From the NCBI GenBank assembly GCA_977020255.1, contig CDROCS010002432.1, positions 1-64,000 on the forward strand: a stretch of 64,000 bases of DNA, in the 5' to 3' direction. The notes beneath the pieces are model-generated. The model was not told the origin of the DNA. It did no database searches and saw only the letters and a program-made list of their open reading frames with translations. This DNA comes from Obrimoposthia wandeli. Taxonomy: Eukaryota. The position numbers and the translations under genes were made by a program. Below are positions 7,267 through 54,100 of the stretch, piece by piece. Within the stretch, counting starts at the first letter, position 1. Each line of letters starts with the position of its first letter.

Positions 7267-7734
7267 TTATAACCCTAATTCTGATAATTCAGGATGATCA
7301 TCAGGACGTCGTCCTTGTGGCCAGTGAAACTTTCTCTCTGATGCTTTAATCGGTAAGTCGTTAATACTGGCAAATCTATTTTGCATTAGGCCGTTGTTAT
7401 CAAACTCCCAGTTTTCATTACCGTAGGAGCGGAACCAGTCGCCATTTTTATCTTGCCATTCGTAGGCATATCGCACGGCAATGCGGTTATCAGTAAAGGC
7501 CCATAACTCTTTGATTAAGCGATACGCTAATTCCTTTTGCCATTTTGCTTTCAGGAAGCTCTCTGCTTCTTGGCGACCGTTAACAAAGCTAGCTCGATTT
7601 CGCCATTGGGTATCAAGTGTATAGGCCATTGCTACTTTTTCTGCATTACGGCTGTTCCATCCGTCTTCGGCTAAACGTACTTTTTGACGTGCTGTTGCTT
7701 CATTAAACGGGGGGAGTGGTGGTCTAGTTGACAT
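7267..7734 (-). CDS. DUF1348 / SnoaL-like (NTF2 fold) protein
   Basis: RPPLPPF...[12 protein letters not shown]...[10 protein letters not shown]...[11 protein letters not shown] signature. Confidence 0.9.
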
Positions 7735-7797
7735 AGTAATTTCCTCAATGGTCGTTAGTAAATAAGTTAGCTAGTAAGTTAGTAAGTGAATGTGTGT

Positions 7798-9828
7798 TTA
7801 TAAATCCAAAATAATCGCGCTAGTGCCTTTTGCCGGGACTGCACAGCAGATAAGCACTTCGTTTTCTGCGATTTCTACGCTTGGTTGTGTTCTATAAGTA
7901 ACCTTACCCGCGTGTAGTTTTACGGCACATGATCCACAGTTGCCATTTCTGCAGCTATAGGCTGGCGATAGCCCTTGTTTTTCGGCTACCACTAAGAGTG
8001 TTTCATCACCTTTGTGCCATTGTTGTGTGATTTTTGAGTGGCGAAACTCTAGCGTGGTGCTATCGGCTTCTTTCGTTATGTCATTTTTATGGGTTAAGCG
8101 GCGTAAAGAGGCTGGCCCAAATGTTTCTGCGAAAATTTGTTTATCGGCAACACCGAGTTCAAGCAAAAGGTCATACATTGCTTGCATAAATGCTTTTGGT
8201 CCACATAGAAAGTAATCACTTGTTTGAAGTGCATTAAGGTCTGTGCTGTTTTCTACTAAAACGTGTTTGGATATTCTTTTACCTGCAAGCGGGTAGTAAG
8301 CAATGCTGTTATCAGTGGCTGAGGCTAGTTTTGTAAAGTCATCATAAAAAGCCAGTTGCTCTCTTGTTTGCGCCGAATGAAAAATACTGAGGGGCCTTAT
8401 ATAGCGCATTCTAATGCCTTCAATATACGTTTGTAACGCCATTGATATCATAGGTGTTATACCTACTCCTCCGGCTAATAGTACGGCAGGTCGTTTGGCT
8501 GATGTGTCTAGCCAAAAATTTCCTTGAGGTAGCTTTGCGTCAATCAGTGCACCAATGGTTAGGTTTTGATGTAAATGTGATGACGCCACACCATGTAATT
8601 CACGCTTAACCGAAATGCGATAAAACGCATCATGAGGCGAGCTAGACAAGGTATAGTTGCGAATAATCCACTCTTTTTTCTTCGGCATTGTTAAATCACT
8701 GGCTAAGCCAAGCGCTATGCGAATAGTTAAGTGTTGGCCTGCTTTAAAGGGCACAAGTTCACCCTTATCGTGTTTTTCTAGATAAAAAGATCGTATGTCA
8801 GCCGTTTCATCAACGATCTTAACAACCTTAAATGAATGCCACTTATTTGATTGCTGCTGAGCCATTTCAAGTTGCTTAGCTTGTGCCCAACTACCGGTTA
8901 ACAGTGAATTAGGAGAATACTCAACAAGGCTAGCTCTAAAAGGTAAGGCATTTTTTATACTCAGGCCTTGCTCGACAATAAATTGCCAACCGCGCTGTGC
9001 ACCTTTGAATGAATTAAGTCGAGGATCATGCTCTGGCAGTATTTCCACTCGTCCGGAAAGGAATAATAAGTCACCTGTTTCAAAGTTAGGAAAGAGCAAA
9101 CCCGCTTTCGGATTCAGTAAGAAGTTGCCCATGGTATTAAAGAAGTTGTTGCCTGCGTAATCAGGAATGGTCAGGGTATTGCCATCTACGGCTACAAAAC
9201 CTGATTTTCCGCCACGATGCGATACGTCAATGCTTTCGACGTTTTGCGTATTTTTGACGTTAACTGCGCTAGCGACAAAAAAAGTATCGGCCTGAGAAAT
9301 TACACTTTTAGCGTCACTGTCTAATTCATCAAAATAGGTTTTTATTGCCGCCACGTTGTCAACTTGGCGAAAATCACGGGTTTGAATGTACTGTGGACAA
9401 TTGCCAAATGATTGATCAACTTTAACGCTAAAATTATTCTCTGTGACAGAGGTTATGTGTGCATTTAAACGGTTTCGTCTGCGTGTTGGTATTTCAATGC
9501 CCAAAAAACCTAATGGCCGACCCAGTTTTAGTGAGCTTGATAAAGGATCGCCTGTAATAGGCGTTGCTTGAATATCCACATTGGTAGGTGTTGTTGAATT
9601 CATAAAACCAGGCGAGCCCGGTAAAATAGAGGCCCAAGGTCTGCCTGCTTCGTCGACGCTACCAACAACAACAAAAGGCAGTTTGGCAAAAAAGTCACGG
9701 TGCTGCTCGGGCAGGTAAGAACGAATAACTTTGCGGCCAATAGTCGCCATTGCATCGGCTTTGCCCACTCGCTGTTGCATGGCTTTTTCGCCGGCATGAA
9801 AAGGTGATGTTTCTGATGCGTTAGACAT
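7798..9828 (-). CDS. Fusion of PNPOx-like FMN-binding domains, an FNR-type FAD/NAD reductase and a 2Fe-2S ferredoxin
   Basis: NCPQYI, SHRGG, PDYAGNNFFNTMGN; RNYTLS; AGGVGITP; YFLCGP; CRNGNCGSC...LICC. Confidence 0.85.
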   Translation of the reverse strand: MSNASETSPFHAGEKAMQQRVGKADAMATIGRKVIRSYLPEQHRDFFAKLPFVVVGSVDEAGRPWASILPGSPGFMNSTTPTNVDIQATPITGDPLSSSLKLGRPLGFLGIEIPTRRRNRLNAHITSVTENNFSVKVDQSFGNCPQYIQTRDFRQVDNVAAIKTYFDELDSDAKSVISQADTFFVASAVNVKNTQNVESIDVSHRGGKSGFVAVDGNTLTIPDYAGNNFFNTMGNFLLNPKAGLLFPNFETGDLLFLSGRVEILPEHDPRLNSFKGAQRGWQFIVEQGLSIKNALPFRASLVEYSPNSLLTGSWAQAKQLEMAQQQSNKWHSFKVVKIVDETADIRSFYLEKHDKGELVPFKAGQHLTIRIALGLASDLTMPKKKEWIIRNYTLSSSPHDAFYRISVKRELHGVASSHLHQNLTIGALIDAKLPQGNFWLDTSAKRPAVLLAGGVGITPMISMALQTYIEGIRMRYIRPLSIFHSAQTREQLAFYDDFTKLASATDNSIAYYPLAGKRISKHVLVENSTDLNALQTSDYFLCGPKAFMQAMYDLLLELGVADKQIFAETFGPASLRRLTHKNDITKEADSTTLEFRHSKITQQWHKGDETLLVVAEKQGLSPAYSCRNGNCGSCAVKLHAGKVTYRTQPSVEIAENEVLICCAVPAKGTSAIILDL

Positions 9829-9856
9829 ATTGGCCTCAAGTTTGGTTAATTACTCT

Positions 9857-9944
9857 TAAATGATTGCACAGCTAAATGATTGCACTGCTAAATGACTGAA
9901 CGGCTAAACGATTGTGCTATTTAGTTATTTAGTTATTTAGCTAT
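9857..9944. repeat. Intergenic tandem repeats (4 x 16 bp, then 3 x 8 bp)
   Basis: TAAATGATTGCACAGC / TAAATGATTGCACTGC / TAAATGACTGAACGGC / TAAACGATTGTGCTAT, then TTAGTTAT x2 and TTAGCTAT. Confidence 0.8.
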
Positions 9945-10564
9945 TTTGCAAGCAGGCCAGCTTCAGTTGTTGGCATAGCGACAAAGCCATCAAGCGCTTC
10001 AATATTCTTTAAAAGACGCTGAACATTTGGGTAAGGTGATAACGAGACGTTGCCTTCTGGCGCATGGGCGGTGTAGCTATAAATGGCAATGTCTGCGATT
10101 GTTGGTGTGTTACCCACAAGAAACTCACGCCCTTGCATGTGCATGTCTAATTTACTCAGGGCTTTTGCGGCAATTACCATGGTGTACTCAACATTGATTG
10201 GCGCATTAAATACAGTGATCAACCTCGCTGCCGCAGGTCCAAATGCAAGCTCACCAGCAGCCAGCGTAAGAAACTTTTGAATGTCAGCTTCAATGATTGG
10301 ATCGTTGGGCAAAAAAGTGGGCGCATATTTTTTCGCTAAATAAACCAAAATAGCATTGGAGTCAGATATAACCACGTCACCATCTTCAATAACCGGTACT
10401 TGGCCCAGTGGGTTTAGGGCGAGAAAGGGCGCTTCTTTGTGCTCACCTGCAGGTAAGTTAACTATATTCACCTGGTGCTTAATACCTGCAATAGCTGCAA
10501 ATAATACCACTCGGTGTGCGTGTCCTGATAATGGGAAACTATGAATTTTTATGGTGTTCGACAT
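9941..10564 (-). CDS. Glutathione S-transferase family protein
   Basis: LSGHAHRV, NPLGQVPV, SDSNAILVYLA, PTIADIA motifs. Confidence 0.92.
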   Translation of the reverse strand: MSNTIKIHSFPLSGHAHRVVLFAAIAGIKHQVNIVNLPAGEHKEAPFLALNPLGQVPVIEDGDVVISDSNAILVYLAKKYAPTFLPNDPIIEADIQKFLTLAAGELAFGPAAARLITVFNAPINVEYTMVIAAKALSKLDMHMQGREFLVGNTPTIADIAIYSYTAHAPEGNVSLSPYPNVQRLLKNIEALDGFVAMPTTEAGLLAK

Positions 10565-10721
10565 GATTAATTCCTTGAGTATTGGTTAGGTTAAGTTGCT
10601 CGTTGTATTGAGAGTTAAATAGTAGAGCTAATGTTACATGTAGACAATATGGTGGAATATGGAATTACTATGTACAATATGTTCATAAAGGTGGTGCTAA
10701 CCACAATCAAAAAGAGTAATC

Positions 10722-11630
10722 GTGATGGACACCATTGATGGCATGCGTACTTTTGTTGCTGTGGCTAAGCAAAAGTCATTTACTAGCGGCGCTAAACTTA
10801 TTGGCATTAGTACGAAACTGGCCAGCAAATACATTGGCCAGCTAGAAGAACGGCTTGACGCACAGTTGTTTCATCGTACAACGCGTAGTGTGACATTAAC
10901 GGAAACAGGGCAGGCTTACTTTCTAAAATGTGTACCGGTATTAGAGCAATTTGCTGAACTTGAAGATGTTGTTCAGCAGGGGCAGTCTGAACTTGCTGGC
11001 GTGATAAGAATAACCGCACCGACCGGTTTTGGCAGCACTAAGCTTGTAGAGGCGTTAGCTCCCTTTCAAAAAATGCACCCGAAAGTGAGTATCGATATGC
11101 GTTTGTCTGACCATATTGTCAGCATAGTGGATGAAGGAATTGACTTAGCTATTCGCTTTGGCAAATTAGAAGACTCAACCATGATCGCCAGAAAGCTTAT
11201 GGATATGCGTATTGTCGTATTTGCCTCACCAGATTATTTAGCTGAATTTGGTCGGCCGAAACATCCGAGTGCTTTATCGACCCATAATTGTCTTTTACAA
11301 CAATTTAGTCTTGAACCCCATCATTGGCAGTTTAAAATTGCGGGCGAGATGAAGTTATACCCCGTGATGGGCTCATACAGTGCAAACTCACCTCGTGCGG
11401 TTGCTCACATGGCGGCTGCTGGATTAGGCATTGGCGCGGCCCCAGCGTATGTAGTGGAGTCGTATATAAAAGAGGGATCGTTAACGTTATTATTTGAAGA
11501 TAACGAAGCACGTATTATTCCGTTGCATGCGGTATACCCATCCGGCAGGCATTTACCTAAACGTATTCGAGCGTTAATAGAGCATTTAGCTATGGTGTTT
11601 AAAGCATCCTCGCTTGGGCCGAGAAACTAG
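10722..11630 (+). CDS. LysR-family regulator, divergent from the GST operon
   Basis: N-terminal HTH (SFTSGA...LEERL..LFHRTTRSV), DEGIDLAIR. Confidence 0.93.
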   Translation: MMDTIDGMRTFVAVAKQKSFTSGAKLIGISTKLASKYIGQLEERLDAQLFHRTTRSVTLTETGQAYFLKCVPVLEQFAELEDVVQQGQSELAGVIRITAPTGFGSTKLVEALAPFQKMHPKVSIDMRLSDHIVSIVDEGIDLAIRFGKLEDSTMIARKLMDMRIVVFASPDYLAEFGRPKHPSALSTHNCLLQQFSLEPHHWQFKIAGEMKLYPVMGSYSANSPRAVAHMAAAGLGIGAAPAYVVESYIKEGSLTLLFEDNEARIIPLHAVYPSGRHLPKRIRALIEHLAMVFKASSLGPRN

Positions 11631-11796
11631 AACTCAAAATGTTTTGGTGCTTTATCTGTTGTTCAGGCGAGTATAGACAAAGAATAGGTTTTAATTAAAA
11701 TAGTCGAGTAATCAAGTAATTGAATAACTAAAGCCCTTAACTAAAATGCTTTAGTGAATTCACTATCTATTATCCATACACATTAATTTCGCTCAT

Positions 11797-11834
11797 AAAA
11801 AAACTAGCTATGCATTAAGCAAAGCTAGTTTTTT
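11797..11834. terminator. Bidirectional terminator
   Basis: AAAAAAACTAGCT...AGCTAGTTTTTT between convergent genes. Confidence 0.7.
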
Positions 11835-11919
11835 ATCAGTATTATCAAAGGCAATATTATAACGAGTTGATTAATTTCTATTTATTTTTTCTCATAAAAA
11901 AGTAGAAAAGAGAATCAAT

Positions 11920-14646
11920 TTAATGCGTTTTATTTATATCCTCTGGTGTTATTTCAGCATCAGGCTTAGTACGTTGAATATTTTCATATTTAGTCGCTTT
12001 AACCTGAGCGGGATCAGCCATTTGGTCAATGTATTTTTGGGCAACGCTAGCATCAATAACTTTTTTACCTTGATGCTGCACGTTATAGCGAGATAAATAA
12101 AACCAAATATCTTTTGCTTGAAAGTCTTTAATGACTTCGCCTTTTTGTGATTTGGCGTAGTTATCTTTAAAGCCATCGCTTTGCACATAACTGACTAAAC
12201 GCTTGATTTCGTCTTTGGTCAATGTACCGCCAACTTTATCACCGTTACCTATGCCAAAGGCTGGCATAGAGGCAGTAGGGTTGCCTGAATAAACGAAACC
12301 TTCCATCGCTGCTGCAGGGTATGTCATGAAGTTCTTCAAAGGCTTACCGTCAATACCTTCGCCATTTTGACCATGGCAAAGCATACAGTTTGCTTCAAAA
12401 ATCTGCTTACCAGACAAATTATGTTGTGTACCTTTACCTATAAGTATTGGTTTTGAAGGCTGTAAAGGAATACTAGAGCCATCAGTACGTATTAAGTCAT
12501 CTCGTTTTACTAAACCGGCAGCATTTGGATTAAACAGCGCCAATTGTGGTGCCTGTTTAAGTGCAGGGTGATGTGCTATCGAAAAGTTCATCGCAACGTT
12601 TTTAACATTTTCACCTTGGTGAATATCACCTTCAATTGCATCGAATACTGCGTTTGAACTTGCGCCTAGGTTTATTTTTACTTCACCAGACATTACTGGA
12701 GCTGCACCATACTCACCATGAGCAGCACTTACATAAGGAATGCCATCAGCATCGTCATCACCGTTACCATAGCCAGTAAATATTTCACCCGTTGATTGAT
12801 GCTCAGATAATAATAATCCACTTTGATTAACGGTTTGAACCCACCAACGAGTCATGTGCTCTACTTGGTCTTCTAATAAGTAGCTCGGTGTTGTGAACAT
12901 TATTTCGCGTAAAGCCGCCATAGTAATACCAACAGAATAAGGCGTAATGGTGGCAATATCGTTATTTAGCTCACTACGATAAACCCCATCTCTTACTTGC
13001 CAGTAGTTTTTGTTGACATGGTTATATGCTTTTCGAGCTGCGACTAAGTATTTATCGTCACGGCTCGAGTAATACGCGGCAATTAGTGCGCGAATAGCTT
13101 CAAACTGTGACGTGCCGATATCGCGTTGACCATTAGCTTGTCCTGAAGTGCTATAACTGCTGTTAAAACTACCGTTAGTATTTTGCACTTTCACTAAAAA
13201 GTTAGCGTTATTAACTAATAATACTTTTGCTTGCTCAACAAGTTCAGGCTTGCGCCCCATGCTCTGCCAAGATTGCGCCATATCATTAACTGCCACCATT
13301 GCCATGGCCATATCTTTTAAGGTAATGCTTGAGCCTTTACCTTCTTCAGGATGCCATTGAGAAACAAGAATGTTGTTATCAGTATGCATGGCTTGAATAT
13401 TTTTAAACACGGCATTGCCAATTGACTCAGCAAGTAAACCGGTACGCTTTTCAACTAAACCACCATCTACCGGTGGATTATCAGTAAAAAAGTCACCACG
13501 ACGGTCTGCTGCTACAGCATAAGCAGAAGTTGCCCATACCCATGATGCTTGATCCCATAACTGACTGCTGGCGTCTTGCATGTCCATTGCCCAAACACGT
13601 TCAGGAATGTCACCAACCCATAATAAGTTTGGCTTTATTTCATGCGGTAAGTACTTAAAGCCATCTTTAGGATCATAAGTTTCGGTGTTAAGGCCTATAA
13701 GTTTTTCACCATCAGTAAACATTGATGACTTCACTTGTAACATGGCATTTAACGCACTCATGGTTAAGCCCCAGCCGCGCATGCCTTCTTCAGCGTCATT
13801 ACCGAGTAATGATACTTCTTTATGCTTCGATATATGCGTGGTACCGGTATGATTTGCTTGAAAGAATCGGTCTAACCATTGTGAACGGCGTTTAACAAAT
13901 TGGCCGATAGCACCTAAGTTAAATGTGGTGTCCATATCTCCATGATCAAAGCGCTGCGGTAAGTCGTTAAAGTAGGTGTTAGGTACTCCCCAACCTCCTT
14001 TTTTACCACTAATAGGATCATCAAAGCTATCGGTGTTATCTAATTTACCAGTAAAAAAGGGTTGTACTGATTTATATTGTAAGTAGGTTGGTTGAATATC
14101 ATCAAAAACGCGAGGAAACCCCGTTCGCTGATAAACCAAAGGTAATTCCATACCTAATAAAATGTCTTTATTTGAGAAGTTTCGTTCACCTCGGTCACGT
14201 AATAACTTATTGAACTGACTTTGTTTTTCAGCTTTTATGCTAAAATAAGGGCCATGCACCATATGGACACCCGAATGACTACGTCCACCAATATAATCAA
14301 GTAAGTAACGGGCATAAAAGTACATTTCACGGGCAGTCACCCACTGAAAGGCTCTTTTATAAGCGACAGGAAAGCTTGCTTTAACCATGTCGTTATAGCC
14401 TTCCATGCCTGTTTTATAACCTTCATTTGCCATGAAAGTCGCTTCGTTAGTATAAAAAGTACGATCAATGATCTTACTGTTAATCTTCGAACGGTACTGC
14501 GATAAGTCAGGTTGTGAGAAGCCCCCTTTAATGGCTACGGTACGCTGGTCTGAGGTTAATATATAATTTTTCGCAATCGCCTGAGTGATGAATGCACAGG
14601 TAATTGAGATACAAAGTGTTTTGACGATAAATTTTTTATTTTTCAT
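11920..14646 (-). CDS. Exported 908-aa protein: unknown N-domain, (alpha/alpha)-toroid-like region and C-terminal monoheme cytochrome c
   Basis: Sec signal ending AIA; AIRALIAAYYSSRDDKYLVAARKAYNHVNKNYW helix pair; DDDADGIP acidic loop; CMLCH (coded at 12373-12387) with SMPAFG as candidate distal Met. Confidence 0.7.
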   Translation of the reverse strand: MKNKKFIVKTLCISITCAFITQAIAKNYILTSDQRTVAIKGGFSQPDLSQYRSKINSKIIDRTFYTNEATFMANEGYKTGMEGYNDMVKASFPVAYKRAFQWVTAREMYFYARYLLDYIGGRSHSGVHMVHGPYFSIKAEKQSQFNKLLRDRGERNFSNKDILLGMELPLVYQRTGFPRVFDDIQPTYLQYKSVQPFFTGKLDNTDSFDDPISGKKGGWGVPNTYFNDLPQRFDHGDMDTTFNLGAIGQFVKRRSQWLDRFFQANHTGTTHISKHKEVSLLGNDAEEGMRGWGLTMSALNAMLQVKSSMFTDGEKLIGLNTETYDPKDGFKYLPHEIKPNLLWVGDIPERVWAMDMQDASSQLWDQASWVWATSAYAVAADRRGDFFTDNPPVDGGLVEKRTGLLAESIGNAVFKNIQAMHTDNNILVSQWHPEEGKGSSITLKDMAMAMVAVNDMAQSWQSMGRKPELVEQAKVLLVNNANFLVKVQNTNGSFNSSYSTSGQANGQRDIGTSQFEAIRALIAAYYSSRDDKYLVAARKAYNHVNKNYWQVRDGVYRSELNNDIATITPYSVGITMAALREIMFTTPSYLLEDQVEHMTRWWVQTVNQSGLLLSEHQSTGEIFTGYGNGDDDADGIPYVSAAHGEYGAAPVMSGEVKINLGASSNAVFDAIEGDIHQGENVKNVAMNFSIAHHPALKQAPQLALFNPNAAGLVKRDDLIRTDGSSIPLQPSKPILIGKGTQHNLSGKQIFEANCMLCHGQNGEGIDGKPLKNFMTYPAAAMEGFVYSGNPTASMPAFGIGNGDKVGGTLTKDEIKRLVSYVQSDGFKDNYAKSQKGEVIKDFQAKDIWFYLSRYNVQHQGKKVIDASVAQKYIDQMADPAQVKATKYENIQRTKPDAEITPEDINKTH

Positions 14647-14665
14647 TATTATGCTCTTTCCTAGC

Positions 14666-16159
14666 TTAAAGAATCGTACTGATAGAAAAACGGAAAATTG
14701 ATTCAGGTGCAGGACCTAAATCAGGTTCAATAACACGAAAGAGTGTTGATAACGTAAAGCGAAGTTGAGGATTTGGACTGAAAATTATAGAAGGAGCAAT
14801 AAAGCCTGTTAAACCTCCAGAAAATCCAGGTCGATGCCCAACATCAAAAACAAAGGCTTCTTCGCCAACACTGCCACAATTACTCACTACACCAATATCG
14901 GCGGCAATACAGGTATGAATTTCTGGCTCAGGAATGTTGCCTGAATACGTATCTTCTTCACGATCGAAAGCAATTAAACTTAAATCAAGAGAGAGGTAAT
15001 CTTTATAGATAGGCTTCACGAAAGAAGTGAAATAGGTAGTAATGTCACCGGGATCAATGCCATCACTTTCTGAGACGAACTTATGGCTAAAGCCACCATG
15101 TAGTGCGGAACGTCCTAGGAAACTATTAGCAGAAAATTGCTTGGTCAAAAATGCACCAACTAAGAAGCTGGTTGATCCGGTACCTGACTGTAAAATAGCA
15201 GGTAAACGACCATCGGCAGAAAAACGACCAAAAACACCATTGTTAAACGGGAAATCGCCAACAAATGAATTATCGAAATTTTGACCGCCAGGAGAAAAGC
15301 TTTGTACGCCTAATGAAGGAGCACTAAAGGCCGGATTGTTATTACACAATTCCCTATTATCAATATTAAAATTCCTGAAGAAACAACGACCATCGCCCCA
15401 AGTGCCATTTTCTACATTGGCTCTTTGTACGGCATCAAAACCTTGCGCAGCTACGGTATTTGGTGGCTGAGGACGACGAGCACTGATTCTACCATTGCTA
15501 CCAAAAGTCGCTTCATTACTGCCTGTTGGTAAAAATACCGCACCCACTACAGCTAAACCAAAACCGCTATTAGCTTGATCCAGAACCTTTTTCTTTAAAA
15601 ATATACCTACATCACCAATGTGAGAAGAACTACCTGCATTTTCTAAACTGATAAACGATTGGCCGTTAGGGTTAATGGAACCATTTGTTTCTACATTGCG
15701 ATAAGGTAAATTAACTCGTAATGTGAAACTGTGTAAGTATTTTCTATTTAAATCAAAACCGTAAAATAAATCTAGATCTGATAATTGTCTGTTAACTTTA
15801 AAATTACTAAAAATATCAGTGTTGGGATCGCCATCTTTAAAAAAGTCATTTCCATCAAGTGATAGATGACGCTGAGAGAAATCTAACCTGAAGGAACCTG
15901 GTGGTAAAACATAGGCATGTTGAGTAACAGCAGGTGTTAACAACGGAGGAATAAAGGTTTTTATTTGATGACCAATTTGCTTTCTGTCATGTACGTAAAA
16001 GTCATCACTGCCATAGATACTGTCTGCTGTACCAAGCGTGAGATAATCGTCAATGCTACTCTTTTTTACTTCTTCAGCAAACGTTGCTATCGGCGCATTT
16101 AATAGTAGGGCCAATAGCAGCTTTTGCCTGAGTTTTAATTTTTTATGGTGCATTTTCAT
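14666..16159 (-). CDS. Outer-membrane beta-barrel, probably Phenol_MetA_deg/COG4313-like channel
   Basis: Signal peptide; IGDVGIFLK, FLPTG and LQSGTGS family-like motifs; alternating amphipathic strands; two Cys pairs. Confidence 0.65.
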   Translation of the reverse strand: MKMHHKKLKLRQKLLLALLLNAPIATFAEEVKKSSIDDYLTLGTADSIYGSDDFYVHDRKQIGHQIKTFIPPLLTPAVTQHAYVLPPGSFRLDFSQRHLSLDGNDFFKDGDPNTDIFSNFKVNRQLSDLDLFYGFDLNRKYLHSFTLRVNLPYRNVETNGSINPNGQSFISLENAGSSSHIGDVGIFLKKKVLDQANSGFGLAVVGAVFLPTGSNEATFGSNGRISARRPQPPNTVAAQGFDAVQRANVENGTWGDGRCFFRNFNIDNRELCNNNPAFSAPSLGVQSFSPGGQNFDNSFVGDFPFNNGVFGRFSADGRLPAILQSGTGSTSFLVGAFLTKQFSANSFLGRSALHGGFSHKFVSESDGIDPGDITTYFTSFVKPIYKDYLSLDLSLIAFDREEDTYSGNIPEPEIHTCIAADIGVVSNCGSVGEEAFVFDVGHRPGFSGGLTGFIAPSIIFSPNPQLRFTLSTLFRVIEPDLGPAPESIFRFSISTIL

Positions 16160-16567
16160 ATCCTAAATAATTTCTTACTACTGATAGTGAAAAATTATTC
16201 TACGGATACTAAAAGTTATTTCTTAACAGAAATAGACGCATTCTATAAAGAAATCATCACGAAGGTATCACGTAAAAATGATAACTTTTTATGAAAGAAA
16301 ATATGAAATGTACGGTCACGAGTGTTTTATTTTTTGAGGGAATATAGCTAACGTTAAAAAGGTTGGTTTATATGACTTTCATTTCTCACTTTAGCGAACG
16401 TAGCTTTTTTGTGTTGCATGGCGTTTAGTTAATGTGTCGTTTCAGTTTTTAAACAGTGTTTAGATCAGCGCTTATATCGAAACTTACACTGGCATTTATA
16501 TTTGTATCAATATGATCCGTAATATAAATGCCAGTCGCTATTTTAAGCGTTAAGCACCCATGCCTAT

Positions 16568-18931
16568 TTATCTATTTTGTAGGCGATTATAATCAAACAG
16601 TCCGGCTTTGAAAGGATGCTGTTTTTTATTGTCAGCATGCACGGTGTCGCTGTGTTGCCAAAAGTTTGGATTGGTTCGGCGAATTGCGTATTGGTCCATT
16701 AACTTTTCATAATCTGCTTGCGTACTCAATGCTGACACCAACTCAACATAACTCGACACTTGCGACTCGTTAATATTGATAAATACATCAGGATAAGCGC
16801 CCACTAAACCATGTGTCACGGTTAGGGTATCTAGCTCAGGTAAGCGGTTATCGTCTTCACTGAGTAAGCTGGTGATGTTGCTATGGCTATTGTTTCTTAG
16901 CAGGGTGTAATAGTGTGTTTTGTCAGACCCTTGTATCGATAAGAAGGTGATCGGTGGCAATAATGTTACTGGCCCGCCGACTAGGTTTTGTAACTTGTCT
17001 AACGCTTGGTGATGGCTGCTAGGCGTTTTTTCATTTGATAGATTATTTTCCGTCGCAAGTACTGGCTCAAGTTTTTGCTGTAATAACTGATACAACTCTT
17101 GTTTGTATTGCGTGGTTTTATAATCAATACCAGAAGGCTGAGAGAATAACTTATGTGGGGCAAGTAAGTACTCTTTTTGACTGTCAGATACACCTTGGTA
17201 CCATTTACTGAGTTCAGTTTTTCTTGTTTCTGGTGGTAGCAGTGCTAGAAAGTTGAATTCGCCTTCTATACGTAAAAAATCCATATATAAACGAGTATTT
17301 AATTGATGGCCAATATTGCCATAAACATCAAAGCCAGCGGCTAATAAATAATGAATACGCTCTAATAAACCATAGTCAATTACCCACGATGTTTGTGGTG
17401 GACGTCCGACTAAACCTTTTACTACGGTGGCGGAGTCAATATGTCGAAAGATAGTTAAGGCGGCATTAGGGTTTTCATCGTCGCCAGCCCAAATTTGATC
17501 TGTCGTTAAATGTTCGCCACCAGGAAAAACTTTATTCATCGTGGTTGCTTTATCATGCATGAATTTTTGTTGTAGCTTAGAATATTTTAACCAGTTAGCT
17601 AAAATATAGGCGTTACTTTCAGCTGCTGAAGGTAGGGCTAATTGATCTTGTTGTGCGTTATAAAATGCCGAATGTTCCTTAGCATCTTTCTCATTCGGGT
17701 TAACAAAAAACACCCAAAAATGATCATTAATGACATTTAAAGCGACTTGGCCTCGACAGACTGGGCTTTTAATGAAGTTCATGATGGTAAATTCTGCTTC
17801 TTCAAGCAAAAATTTGTAACGTGCGATGGATGGAATTTCTTCAAAAGCTTTGAAAGGATTTGAAGCAACTTCTGGCTTATACGAAGGCAAACGTGTGACT
17901 TGATAGTTATCTTGTAAAAATAGCTGGCTATATTTTTCTAGTCGCTCGTTGTTTAAAGCGTAAGGCATGTGCGTTTTTTCTAAAATGGTGCCACGTTCGC
18001 GCCAAAGACGATAATAAACGCGGTCTACGCCAGGTTCGTCGTAAGGTCGGCGCGTTGCAATCATATCAATGGCTTGTCCTGGTGGTGTTTTTGAGCGCAC
18101 AACTTTAAAGAACTCTCCAGCCGGTAATTCTGAGAAATACAGGTGGGCTATAAACCAATGCTCGTATAGGTAACGACTGACCAGCCTTTCTTTTAAGCTA
18201 TCACCATTTAAAAAGTTTTCCCACAAGGTTACTTGCTCAGTGTAAGTATCATCTAATGGTGCTTTAGGGGCCATTTTTGCGCCGCTGCGTAGCCAATCTT
18301 GTAAAATTTTATCTTCTGGTGCTGAAAGGGCTGGTAAGCCAAACGGCATGCCCCAATCAGGATTGTTCGCTACGTAGCTGTCCATTTCAACATCGGTCGG
18401 GCATTGTTGATCTCGGTCTAACGCGAAATTAAATTGCTTAGGTAACAATTTACCTTCTGGCAATGGATGTCGCTGCTTAAGGGCGAGCAATCTCGACATT
18501 ACCCCTGTTGTTTGGTTCAGGGCTGGGCTTTGCTGGCGCTCGTTAATCACCGGATAAAAGCCATTGTTGCGCCAAGCCGTTGTACTGTCTTCATCAATAA
18601 ACAATCGTTGTGGCGTTTCTGCAATTAAGCGCGTGCCGTCATAGACCCGTGTTTTACTTGCGCCACGGTCGATACCTTCTGGCGACGATAGTTTTAATTG
18701 GCAAGGAGCATCGTAACAACCATGGCAAACCACACATCGATTTTCAATGATTGGTTGTACTTGTTCATGATAAAAGTCAGCTGGGCTTGAATTGTCGACC
18801 ACCATACGCTGTTGAGGCTCAGCTATACCAAATAGGTTGTCAAAGTGATTGTTGGCAATAACGGCACAACCGCCAAGAATGGCAACGATGATGATAAGTA
18901 CAAAAGGTTTTGTCTTAAGAAAAGCTAACAT
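16568..18931 (-). CDS. cti: Fatty acid cis/trans isomerase
   Basis: Lipobox LGGC, CVVCHGCYDAPCQLKL heme motif, FIKSPVCRGQVALNVI. Confidence 0.93.
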   Translation of the reverse strand: MLAFLKTKPFVLIIIVAILGGCAVIANNHFDNLFGIAEPQQRMVVDNSSPADFYHEQVQPIIENRCVVCHGCYDAPCQLKLSSPEGIDRGASKTRVYDGTRLIAETPQRLFIDEDSTTAWRNNGFYPVINERQQSPALNQTTGVMSRLLALKQRHPLPEGKLLPKQFNFALDRDQQCPTDVEMDSYVANNPDWGMPFGLPALSAPEDKILQDWLRSGAKMAPKAPLDDTYTEQVTLWENFLNGDSLKERLVSRYLYEHWFIAHLYFSELPAGEFFKVVRSKTPPGQAIDMIATRRPYDEPGVDRVYYRLWRERGTILEKTHMPYALNNERLEKYSQLFLQDNYQVTRLPSYKPEVASNPFKAFEEIPSIARYKFLLEEAEFTIMNFIKSPVCRGQVALNVINDHFWVFFVNPNEKDAKEHSAFYNAQQDQLALPSAAESNAYILANWLKYSKLQQKFMHDKATTMNKVFPGGEHLTTDQIWAGDDENPNAALTIFRHIDSATVVKGLVGRPPQTSWVIDYGLLERIHYLLAAGFDVYGNIGHQLNTRLYMDFLRIEGEFNFLALLPPETRKTELSKWYQGVSDSQKEYLLAPHKLFSQPSGIDYKTTQYKQELYQLLQQKLEPVLATENNLSNEKTPSSHHQALDKLQNLVGGPVTLLPPITFLSIQGSDKTHYYTLLRNNSHSNITSLLSEDDNRLPELDTLTVTHGLVGAYPDVFININESQVSSYVELVSALSTQADYEKLMDQYAIRRTNPNFWQHSDTVHADNKKQHPFKAGLFDYNRLQNR

Positions 18932-53660: not shown

Positions 53661-53661
53661 C

Positions 53662-54090
53662 GAGTTGACGAGACAATCGCTGCTTTATCGTTGTACTGCT
53701 TATTTATAAGTAGTAGACAGATAAGGGGGAGGAAAGTCCGGGCTCCAATGAACAGGGTGCCAGGTAACGCCTGGGGGGCGCGAGCCCACGACAAGTGCAG
53801 CAGAGAGAAGACCGCCGATGGTTATCTTTCGAGATTTCACAGGTAAGGCTGAAAGGGTGCGGTAAGAGCGCACCGGATTGCTGGTAACAGTAATTGCAGG
53901 GTAAACTCCACCCGGAGCAAGACCAAATAGGGTTTCATGACTAGGTTAACGCAAGTTTTCATAGTATAAGCGTGGTTCGCGTGGAAACCGGGTAGGTTGC
54001 TTGAGCCTTAGAGCGATTTAAGGCCTAGACGAATGATTGTCACTCTTCCTCGGAAGAGATACAAAACCCGGCTTATGCGTCATCTCAACT
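53662..54090 (+). ncRNA. rnpB: RNase P RNA, bacterial type A
   Basis: GAGGAAAGTCC (53729-53739), CAGGTAACGCCTG, GGTAAACTCC, ACAAAACCCGGCTTA; GAGTTGA...TCAAC terminal P1 pairing. Confidence 0.97.
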
Positions 54091-54100
54091 ATTTTTAGAT

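Follow-up and report, generated by a model that had tools for sequence, protein, structure and literature searches.

What is the role of an outer-membrane beta-barrel that is encoded together with an exported protein joining an (alpha/alpha) toroid to a cytochrome c? This question is raised by two adjacent genes in a 64,000-nucleotide stretch of contig CDROCS010002432.1 (assembly GCA_977020255.1, Obrimoposthia wandeli, positions 1 to 64,000; hereafter the window), in which the gene for a barrel of 497 amino acids (aa) (gene 1, 14666-16159, minus strand) precedes that for a toroid-cytochrome c fusion of 908 aa (gene 2, 11920-14646, minus strand), both of them delimited as open reading frames (ORFs). 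A sequence-only reading of the window had presented the pair as a candidate envelope redox system. We consider it likely that the two proteins form a functionally coupled redox module, and we lean slightly towards the reading that they constitute a channel in the outer membrane together with a periplasmic substrate:cytochrome c oxidoreductase, by which electrons would be fed to high-potential respiratory chains.

Conservation of the barrel-toroid pair

The two genes are separated by 19 nt (14647-14665, minus strand), within which a ribosome-binding site (AGGAAAG, 14656-14662) lies 9 nt ahead of the ATG of gene 2, implying that the barrel and toroid genes would be coupled in translation as well as in transcription. 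A non-coding region of 408 bp (16160-16567, minus strand) precedes the pair, and an intrinsic terminator consisting of a hairpin and a U-run (~11795-11839, minus strand, from RNA folding and sequence) is found between the toroid gene and a convergent LysR-family gene. The terminator hairpin folds with a free energy (dG) of -20.6 kcal/mol (z -6.2), and none of 200 shuffled sequences folds as well; a simple terminator scan missed it because its loop size and bulge fall outside the scan rules. The same-strand arrangement with its ribosome-binding site, the own upstream region of ~400 bp and the downstream terminator had all been described in the sequence-only reading and hold on measurement, and the two genes are confirmed as a self-contained two-gene unit. 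Promoter-like hexamers in 16160-16567 are not above shuffle frequency, and a promoter is not established. The barrel ORF begins with MKMHH (16153-16159, minus strand), with AGGA 1 nt before the first ATG and 7 nt before the second, and the better spacing from AGGA favours Met3 (16153), possibly the actual initiation codon.

When one genome per species was scanned, 55 loci were found to encode a protein related to the toroid protein; at these loci ORFs were called mechanically, neighbouring ORFs were clustered and cluster representatives were annotated. In 50 of the 51 loci with upstream DNA, a homologue of the barrel gene lies directly upstream of the toroid gene on the same strand, normally at a distance of a few tens of bases and sometimes overlapping it. 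A lack of co-conservation in other genomes had been named beforehand as the finding that would speak against the system, and the proposal stands in view of this near-universal adjacency. The loci span Gamma-, Alpha-, Beta- and Deltaproteobacteria, Planctomycetota, Lentisphaeria, Gemmatimonadota, Methylomirabilota, Acidobacteriota and Nitrospinota, and the pair also occurs in Cloacimonadota, Elusimicrobiota, KSB1, Opitutales and Bacteroidota (more than 12 phyla overall). Members include Alteromonadaceae, Saccharophagus, Pseudocolwellia agarivorans, Methylococcales and Ectothiorhodospiraceae; many of the metagenome-assembled genomes (MAGs) among the sources stem from groundwater, subseafloor or oxygen-minimum-zone samples, while Shewanella hanedai JCM 20706 and P. 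agarivorans QM50 are cultured carriers. An extra ORF sits between the barrel and toroid genes in L024. In a Methylococcales MAG (L019, 6242-9902) the barrel gene is split by an inserted opposite-strand ORF of 609 aa, and both genes are in several fragments in a Lacipirellulaceae MAG (L054, 8004-12475) and in Candidatus Thiomargarita nelsonii (L055, 9182-10541); frameshifts, pseudogenes or assembly errors may lie behind these cases.

Across the 43 complete pairs, the pairwise identities of barrel and toroid correlate with r = 0.92, a value reached in none of 2000 permutations, which shows, as far as sequence comparison goes, that the pair is co-inherited, though not necessarily that the two proteins are in physical contact. 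The closest relative locus is that of S. hanedai JCM 20706 (L001, 88% identity). Positions 11936-16263 of the window align to 8379-12711 of this locus at 79% nucleotide identity, the flanks are unrelated, and the upstream DNA common to both is limited to the promoter-proximal ~100 bp. This suggests that the pair lies in a variable region or may have been transferred horizontally as a unit; since only the cassette aligns, the two genes appear to move together without a dedicated accessory gene.

In public databases both proteins are named only "hypothetical protein" or "c-type cytochrome". Literature searches on the pair, in which COG4313/Phenol_MetA_deg was combined with cytochromes, the six-hairpin fold with those of c type, and the bd-like module with both Cyc2 and cupredoxin, found no relevant paper, and PDB sequence and Foldseek searches found no solved homologue of either protein beyond the level of the fold. 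With no curated family, solved sequence homologue or paper found for either protein, we agree with the sequence-only reading that the pair does not correspond to any named system. A confident assignment of both proteins to a pathway already characterised had been the second finding named as contrary to the proposal, and these searches gave none.

Electron carriers and respiratory neighbours

A fused CxxCH domain is present in 40 of the 53 tabulated toroids, and several of the remainder are truncated where their contig ends. Six toroids are complete yet devoid of the haem domain (L041, L042, L047, L048, L052 and L053); every one of them has a cupredoxin gene immediately upstream of the barrel gene, and in L023, L037 and L053 a separate small cytochrome-c-like gene is found just downstream of the toroid gene. 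A gene for a one-electron carrier thus adjoins the pair wherever the built-in cytochrome is missing, and of our arguments for electron exchange by the toroid protein itself, this is the strongest. The cupredoxin gene is the commonest third gene (22 loci, e.g., L020 10634-11413 and L052 5535-6305), and extra haem or cupredoxin genes lie within 5 kb at 34 of the 53 loci. The cupredoxin carries a signal peptide and an invariant His plus Cys-x2-His-x2-Met, and matches amicyanin in profile searches (E 1e-11); it consists of an amicyanin-like type 1 copper domain and a C-terminal CarboxypepD_reg-like beta-sandwich, of which Pfam sees only the sandwich.

Several loci link the pair to respiratory modules. 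Seven loci from three phyla (L008, L010, L015, L017, L021, L024 and L036) encode a bd-like subunit I together with cytochromes c and a multihaem protein that includes an EB_dh haem domain; this bd-like module accompanies the pair in alphaproteobacterial, Gemmatimonadota and Acidobacteriota operons, and resembles the "TO_1"-type putative terminal oxidases discussed for Nitrospirota (PMC9040806). The Gemmatimonadota operons of ~13 genes (L017 3204-19491; L021 3027-19491) comprise a multi-cupredoxin protein, a di-haem cytochrome, a Cyc2-like protein, three cupredoxins and the pair, as well as the bd-like subunit I and cytochromes including the one with the EB_dh haem domain, and look like complete lithotrophic electron-transport islands. 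The Cyc2-like candidate has, by inspection only, one CxxCH followed by a beta-rich region.

In three further loci, from MAGs of Phycisphaerales, Lentisphaeria and Planctomycetota, an idr-like operon opens with the pair and runs in the order barrel, toroid-cytochrome, cupredoxin, two di-haem peroxidases, a Rieske protein with a twin-arginine (Tat) signal, and an AioA-like molybdoenzyme (L014 12700-19836; L016 2561-9304; L022 8636-15215). The start of such a cluster is also found ~7 kb downstream of the pair in an alphaproteobacterial MAG (L012 19723-22613). The gene set idrABP1P2 separates iodate reductase from arsenite oxidase (PMC8692401), and by this published synteny rule the clusters in L014, L016 and L022 qualify, from their gene content, as putative idrP1P2BA-like iodate-reductase islands. 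A linkage to arsenite oxidase was considered, as the AioA-like protein just passes the NCBIfam cut-off, but was rejected because the two peroxidase genes point to iodate reductase (PMC8692401). The AioA-like cluster is confined to 3-4 loci and does not belong to the core. Two-component regulators also recur near the pair, either as a PAS kinase with a sigma-54 activator or as LuxR-type response regulators. Collectively, the cupredoxin, the cytochrome partners and the respiratory modules strengthen the redox part of the sequence-only reading; its further suggestion, that the barrel imports a substrate for the haem protein or else docks it, stays conjectural.

Other neighbours were examined as clues to the substrate and discarded: those of the gammaproteobacterial loci (MFS transporter, octopine dehydrogenase-like protein, citrate transporter, LysR, glutathione S-transferase (GST) and others) are not conserved, and those of the haem-less clade (FG-GAP/ASPIC, sulfate symporter, UbiD, FGE-sulfatase) are not recurrent. 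In the window, the pair is directly preceded by cti (16568-18931, minus strand), which encodes a full-length fatty-acid cis/trans isomerase (Pfam CTI, E 5e-269) with a haem motif of its own, CVVCH. A 15-bp stem-loop lies right after the cti stop codon (~16484-16555; dG -25.9 kcal/mol, z -5.1 by RNA folding). Cti, being also a periplasmic haem protein, was considered as a third partner and rejected, since no Cti homologue is found at the other loci and the stem-loop intervenes; its adjacency to the pair looks incidental. Downstream of the pair are genes for a LysR regulator (10722-11630, plus strand), a GST (9941-10564, minus strand), a 676-aa fusion of PNPOx-like, ferredoxin-reductase and 2Fe-2S domains (7798-9828, minus strand) and a DUF1348 protein (7267-7734, minus strand); this stretch (7267-11630) may be a small gene cluster for detoxification or redox reactions that has no connection with the pair. 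An RNase P RNA of bacterial class A (53661-54091, plus strand, 310 bits) indicates that the window is chromosomal, and no tRNA genes were found in its 64,000 nt.

Architecture of the two proteins

Both proteins carry signal peptides, as previously noted, which are of Sec type by inspection: aa 1-28 of the barrel protein (MKMHHKKLKLRQKLLLALLLNAPIATFA/EE) and aa 1-25 of the toroid protein (MKNKKFIVKTLCISITCAFITQAIA/KN). Among the toroid homologues, 43 of 44 have a Sec-type rather than a twin-arginine N-terminus, and the conserved mature sequence begins directly past the predicted cleavage site. The AlphaFold2 model of the gene 2 product has a mean predicted local distance difference test score (pLDDT) of 89.8 and a predicted template-modelling score (pTM) of 0.91, the latter suggesting that the haem domain is packed in a fixed position on the toroid in the model. 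Homologues of the protein fall into 104 clusters, with hundreds of relatives, many of them at E = 0.

The bulk of the protein (aa 28-735; 12442-14565, minus strand, delimited by fold search and invariant columns) forms a six-hairpin (alpha/alpha) toroid with extra beta-hairpins. The sequence-only assignment as a toroid is confirmed, and the fold is of the AGE type according to Foldseek: the top 27 matches are all AGE-family enzymes or a thioredoxin-AGE fusion (probability 1.0, E 1e-5 to 5e-4), and comprise cellobiose, GlcNAc and glucose 2-epimerases, mannose isomerase and YihS, at ~10% identity and with template-modelling (TM) scores of 0.5-0.6 relative to the target. The six-hairpin fold, the signature of helical-hairpin repeats and the presence of conserved histidines are common to this protein and the AGE superfamily, whereas the window toroid is nearly twice as large, is exported and is fused to or partnered with an electron carrier. 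AGE enzymes use histidines for catalysis, and we know of no characterised AGE enzyme that is exported. Two histidines of the toroid, H335 and H421, are 100% conserved and a third, H266, is ~90% conserved; any correspondence of H335 and H421 to the AGE catalytic histidines would be putative. Further invariant residues are Y109, R113, Y134, E154, W257, K306, R350, D365, D394, N416, W431, D445, Y498, R580, E615 and E621, and there is a DxDxDG loop (D630/D632/D634/G635), whereas cysteine is absent from the toroid region.

At the level of sequence families the toroid is an orphan: it has no Pfam or NCBIfam family, scores 15.4 bits against GlcNAc_2-epim (PF07221; cut-off 23.4) and is likewise sub-threshold for C5-epim_C. 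A profile search aligned a single generic helical-hairpin repeat, to cellobiose 2-epimerase, and protein and profile searches against PDB sequences gave only cytochrome-domain matches and this one generic repeat. A full-library profile search retrieved a wider family of 583 representative proteins at E <= 1e-3, in which no characterised member was found. Its distant members are stand-alone proteins of ~600-700 aa or domains of giant surface proteins (P0242, P0244, P0245) that also carry SdrD_B, DUF11 and type IX secretion signal domains, and the wider family seems to act outside the cytoplasm. A search of plasmids returned distant toroid homologues only, named as hypothetical proteins; one such "hypothetical protein", on the Aeromonas hydrophila plasmid pMCR5_045096 (L056, 6791-8791; 25% identity over 560 residues), is accompanied by neither a barrel nor a cytochrome.

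A class I cytochrome c domain follows the toroid (aa ~738-835; 12142-12435, minus strand, from Pfam and PDB matches), with the haem motif C754-x-x-C757-H758 (12373-12387, minus strand) and the axial ligand M794 (12265-12267, minus strand); C754, C757, H758 and M794 are invariant in 44 sequences. The domain is recognised by PF00034 (Cytochrom_C; 35.5 bits versus a cut-off of 21.3) and by PF13442 (32.3 bits, above cut-off), its PDB matches include QcrC, CcoP and cytochrome c6 as well as nitrite reductases, and the cytochrome domains of type II alcohol dehydrogenases (1kv9, 1yiq) are among the weak PDB matches of the protein. A helical tail of ~75 aa ends the protein. The window protein and every homologue with a haem domain have a single CxxCH, as had been stated for the window, and the distinction from multihaem MtrAB systems drawn on this basis extends to all haem-bearing homologues.

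The barrel protein, which has no CxxCH, belongs to a similarly broad set of homologues (168 clusters; hundreds of relatives, many at E = 0), whose consensus C-terminus is an aromatic residue, as in outer-membrane proteins. It has no Pfam or NCBIfam family and no PDB sequence match by protein or profile search. Its AlphaFold2 model (pLDDT 87) matches FapF best in Foldseek (5o67, E 8e-12; target TM 0.63-0.72) and reaches a target TM of 0.79 to the COG4313 channel Pput2725 (4rl8, 12 strands), next to which the 14 long strand segments assigned by DSSP in the model have to be read; the structural match to the 14-strand FadL and TodX is poor (TM ~0.3). FapF, a plugged barrel of 12 strands preceded by a helical N-terminal region, shares only ~12% sequence identity with the barrel protein, no fap genes or amyloid subunit are found near the pair, and a folded haem protein would be unable to pass through a pore of this type. 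With the COG4313 channels (Pput2725, TcpY, SphA) the barrel has in common the fold and a conserved segment ahead of the first strand, which here spans aa ~69-88 (FIPPLL..HAYVLPP), is not a strand, has a pLDDT of 80-96 and probably occupies the barrel lumen.

COG4313 channels display a conserved cluster of Asp, Pro-Thr-Gly and Asn in loops L2-L4 and a mature length of 270-320 aa (PMC4493636). The cluster is present in the window barrel as D183, P211-T212-G213 and N215, matched by motif and position, not by residue-level structural alignment; of these residues, D183, P211 and G213 are invariant, while T212 and N215 are each kept by at least 90% of homologues. In contrast to the COG4313 channels, the mature protein has ~465 aa, a longer N-terminal region and, starting at the P211-T212-G213 motif, a structured L3 insertion of ~120 residues (aa 211-330; 15170-15529, minus strand; assigned from secondary structure, pLDDT 89-97) that is predicted by the model to be extracellular, and the protein is consistently paired with the toroid, a pairing unreported for that family. 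A cysteine pair within the insertion (C259 and C272) and a second one in a later loop outside 15170-15529 (C417 and C428) are each found in about half of the barrel homologues. The window protein does not match PF13557 (Phenol_MetA_deg) at E <= 1, whereas 11 of 46 barrel homologues do match this family (best E 4.9e-6), and we therefore place the barrel in a divergent group, sister to the COG4313/FapF barrels, and do not count it as a core member. The sequence-only assignment to a COG4313/Phenol_MetA_deg-like barrel is sustained in this sense by the TM of 0.79 to 4rl8 and by the P-T-G motif.

Proposed function and alternative explanations

In the mechanism that we propose, the barrel would capture a substrate unable to cross the membrane unaided and pass it to the periplasm, where it would bind in the pocket of the six-hairpin toroid, whose walls would be formed by arginines, acidic and aromatic residues and the invariant H335 and H421. 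The toroid would then oxidise the substrate and deliver electrons one at a time to its own His/Met haem c domain, from which they would pass to soluble periplasmic carriers (cytochromes c, or the amicyanin-like cupredoxin where encoded) and on to a terminal acceptor; in Shewanella this could be an oxidase, elsewhere the bd-like oxidase module or an iodate reductase. That electrons flow in the oxidative direction appears rather probable to us, whereas the case for substrate import by the barrel is evenly balanced. The pair is most simply an electron source because its neighbours are mostly sinks (oxidase-like modules, iodate reductase, peroxidases) and carriers, an argument from parsimony and not from measurement. 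As to the catalytic centre, we argue for a metal ion acquired in the periplasm, a self-made cofactor, or none at all: Sec export, the cysteine-free toroid and the lack of a maturation gene in the cassette disfavour Fe-S clusters, molybdenum cofactors and, with less force, flavin. The clues to the substrate lead to three different classes. The fold relatives of the toroid and its homologues in surface proteins give a hint, by analogy, of a carbohydrate-like ligand, COG4313-type barrels have been linked to hydrophobic or phenolic molecules (PMC4493636), and the surrounding operons would suit a lithotrophic setting.

Among known systems, the pair most plausibly works, by analogy, in the manner of a cytochrome-c-linked periplasmic dehydrogenase served by its own outer-membrane channel. 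It has in common with quinohaemoprotein dehydrogenases a periplasmic catalytic domain followed by a fused class I cytochrome c, and with the methylamine dehydrogenase-amicyanin-cytochrome chain a dedicated cupredoxin of amicyanin type. However, the catalytic region is an all-helical toroid and not the beta-propeller of the quinohaemoproteins that holds pyrroloquinoline quinone (PQQ), and neither PQQ- or tryptophan tryptophylquinone (TTQ)-type features nor the corresponding maturation genes are found with the cassette. A redox-type domain fused to an AGE-like toroid is seen in the Brucella protein Bab1_2064 (PDB 7tkv), which is among the fold matches; there the fused domain is a thioredoxin, instead of the cytochrome c found here, and no barrel partner accompanies it.

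Several observations speak against the assignment as a substrate-oxidising enzyme with an import channel. No redox cofactor site is identifiable in the toroid, whose nearest structural relatives are non-redox isomerases and epimerases, and FapF, the best structural match of the barrel, exports rather than imports. In the gammaproteobacterial loci, including that of the window, the pair stands alone without informative neighbours, and one locus (L035) has the toroid gene with no barrel within 10 kb. Finally, the Cyc2-like haem-porin (by inspection) of the two Gemmatimonadota operons would be an alternative source of electrons.

This last point would fit a reversed direction of flow, in which the toroid-cytochrome is a terminal reductase that takes electrons from periplasmic cytochromes or the cupredoxin and reduces either an oxidant on its way in or a product on its way out through the barrel; reactive iodine or oxygen species made beside the iodate reductase would be an example. 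Class I cytochrome c domains and amicyanin-like proteins feed reductases as well, the nitrite reductases among the matches being a case in point, and the pair shares operons with the idr-like cluster, whose chemistry yields HIO and H2O2 (PMC8692401). Yet with the pair as a further sink, two sinks and no source would be left in the alphaproteobacterial (L008, L010, L015) and Acidobacteriota (L036) operons, and a catalytic metal site is not evident in the toroid. We consider this explanation unlikely.

A role as a two-piece porin-cytochrome for the oxidation of Fe(II) or Mn(II), in which the barrel would let in or display the metal ion and the single haem accept the electron, similar to a split Cyc2 with the toroid as scaffold or metal-binding cap, is in our judgement very unlikely, even if it has several points in its favour. 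An outer-membrane barrel gene coupled to a c-type cytochrome gene and high-potential carriers are features in common with MtrAB/PCC and Cyc2. The logic of a barrel with a single haem resembles Cyc2, and high-potential cupredoxin and bd-like partners have been proposed for Fe and Mn lithotrophs (PMC9040806). The toroid has many invariant carboxylates besides its DxDxDG loop, and the habitats from which many of the MAGs were recovered would be suitable. On the other hand, MtrAB/PCC systems have ~10 or more haems where the toroid protein has one, and the barrel is, by its fold matches, of the small, narrow and plugged COG4313/FapF type and not a 16- to 28-strand porin; in Cyc2 the haem is fused to the barrel and not carried by a separate protein. 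Neither system has the conserved toroid core. As haem-less toroids exist, this core consists of toroid plus barrel, and a highly conserved toroid of 700 residues is hard to account for as a mere scaffold. The pair is, moreover, present in cultured heterotrophs.

The carbohydrate enzymes that make up all fold relatives of the toroid, its distant homologues within giant surface proteins and the resemblance of the barrel to a secretion pore, FapF, could alternatively indicate an envelope glycan enzyme (epimerase, lyase or hydrolase) with an export pore, its haem domain being regulatory or incidental. We regard such an enzyme as highly improbable, since it leaves the carrier genes beside all six complete haem-less toroids and the respiratory operons unexplained, and since no recurrent glycosyltransferase or polysaccharide-export genes are found among the annotated neighbours. 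Chance adjacency or non-functional ORFs, for which only the lack of family annotation could be adduced, are excluded by the deep conserved families with dozens of invariant residues, the confident folds and the near-universal synteny.

A bolder version of the oxidoreductase reading, which we regard as rather unlikely, would make the pair a new class of envelope respiratory entry point, in which the toroid oxidises its substrate without a classical cofactor, a dedicated COG4313-type channel with an enlarged surface loop delivers this substrate, and, in uncultured marine and subsurface lineages, bd-like oxidases or iodate reductase are fed directly, bypassing the quinone pool. In a cofactor-free route the conserved histidines might, for example, form an enediolate or phenolate that would reduce the adjacent haem c, or the amicyanin-like partner, in one-electron steps.

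The general logic of a cytochrome-c-linked dehydrogenase with its own channel is known, while the parts and the obligate barrel-toroid pairing are new; to our knowledge, the six-hairpin toroid scaffold has not been linked to electron transfer. With two genes, no dedicated accessory genes and two cultured host strains, the module is experimentally tractable. If the proposed function is true, the barrel would become the first example of a COG4313-type protein whose periplasmic partner is obligate, and would help to clarify a channel family of which little is understood, and the pair could account for the electron supply of some of the bd-like oxidase and iodate-reductase operons. It would represent an unrecognised and widespread bacterial route for drawing respiratory electrons from an external compound, spread over more than 12 phyla, with Nitrospinota, Methylomirabilota, Gemmatimonadota, Planctomycetota and marine heterotrophs among its carriers, and the identity of its substrate could assign an energy source to many uncultured lineages of the subseafloor, oxygen-minimum zones and groundwater.

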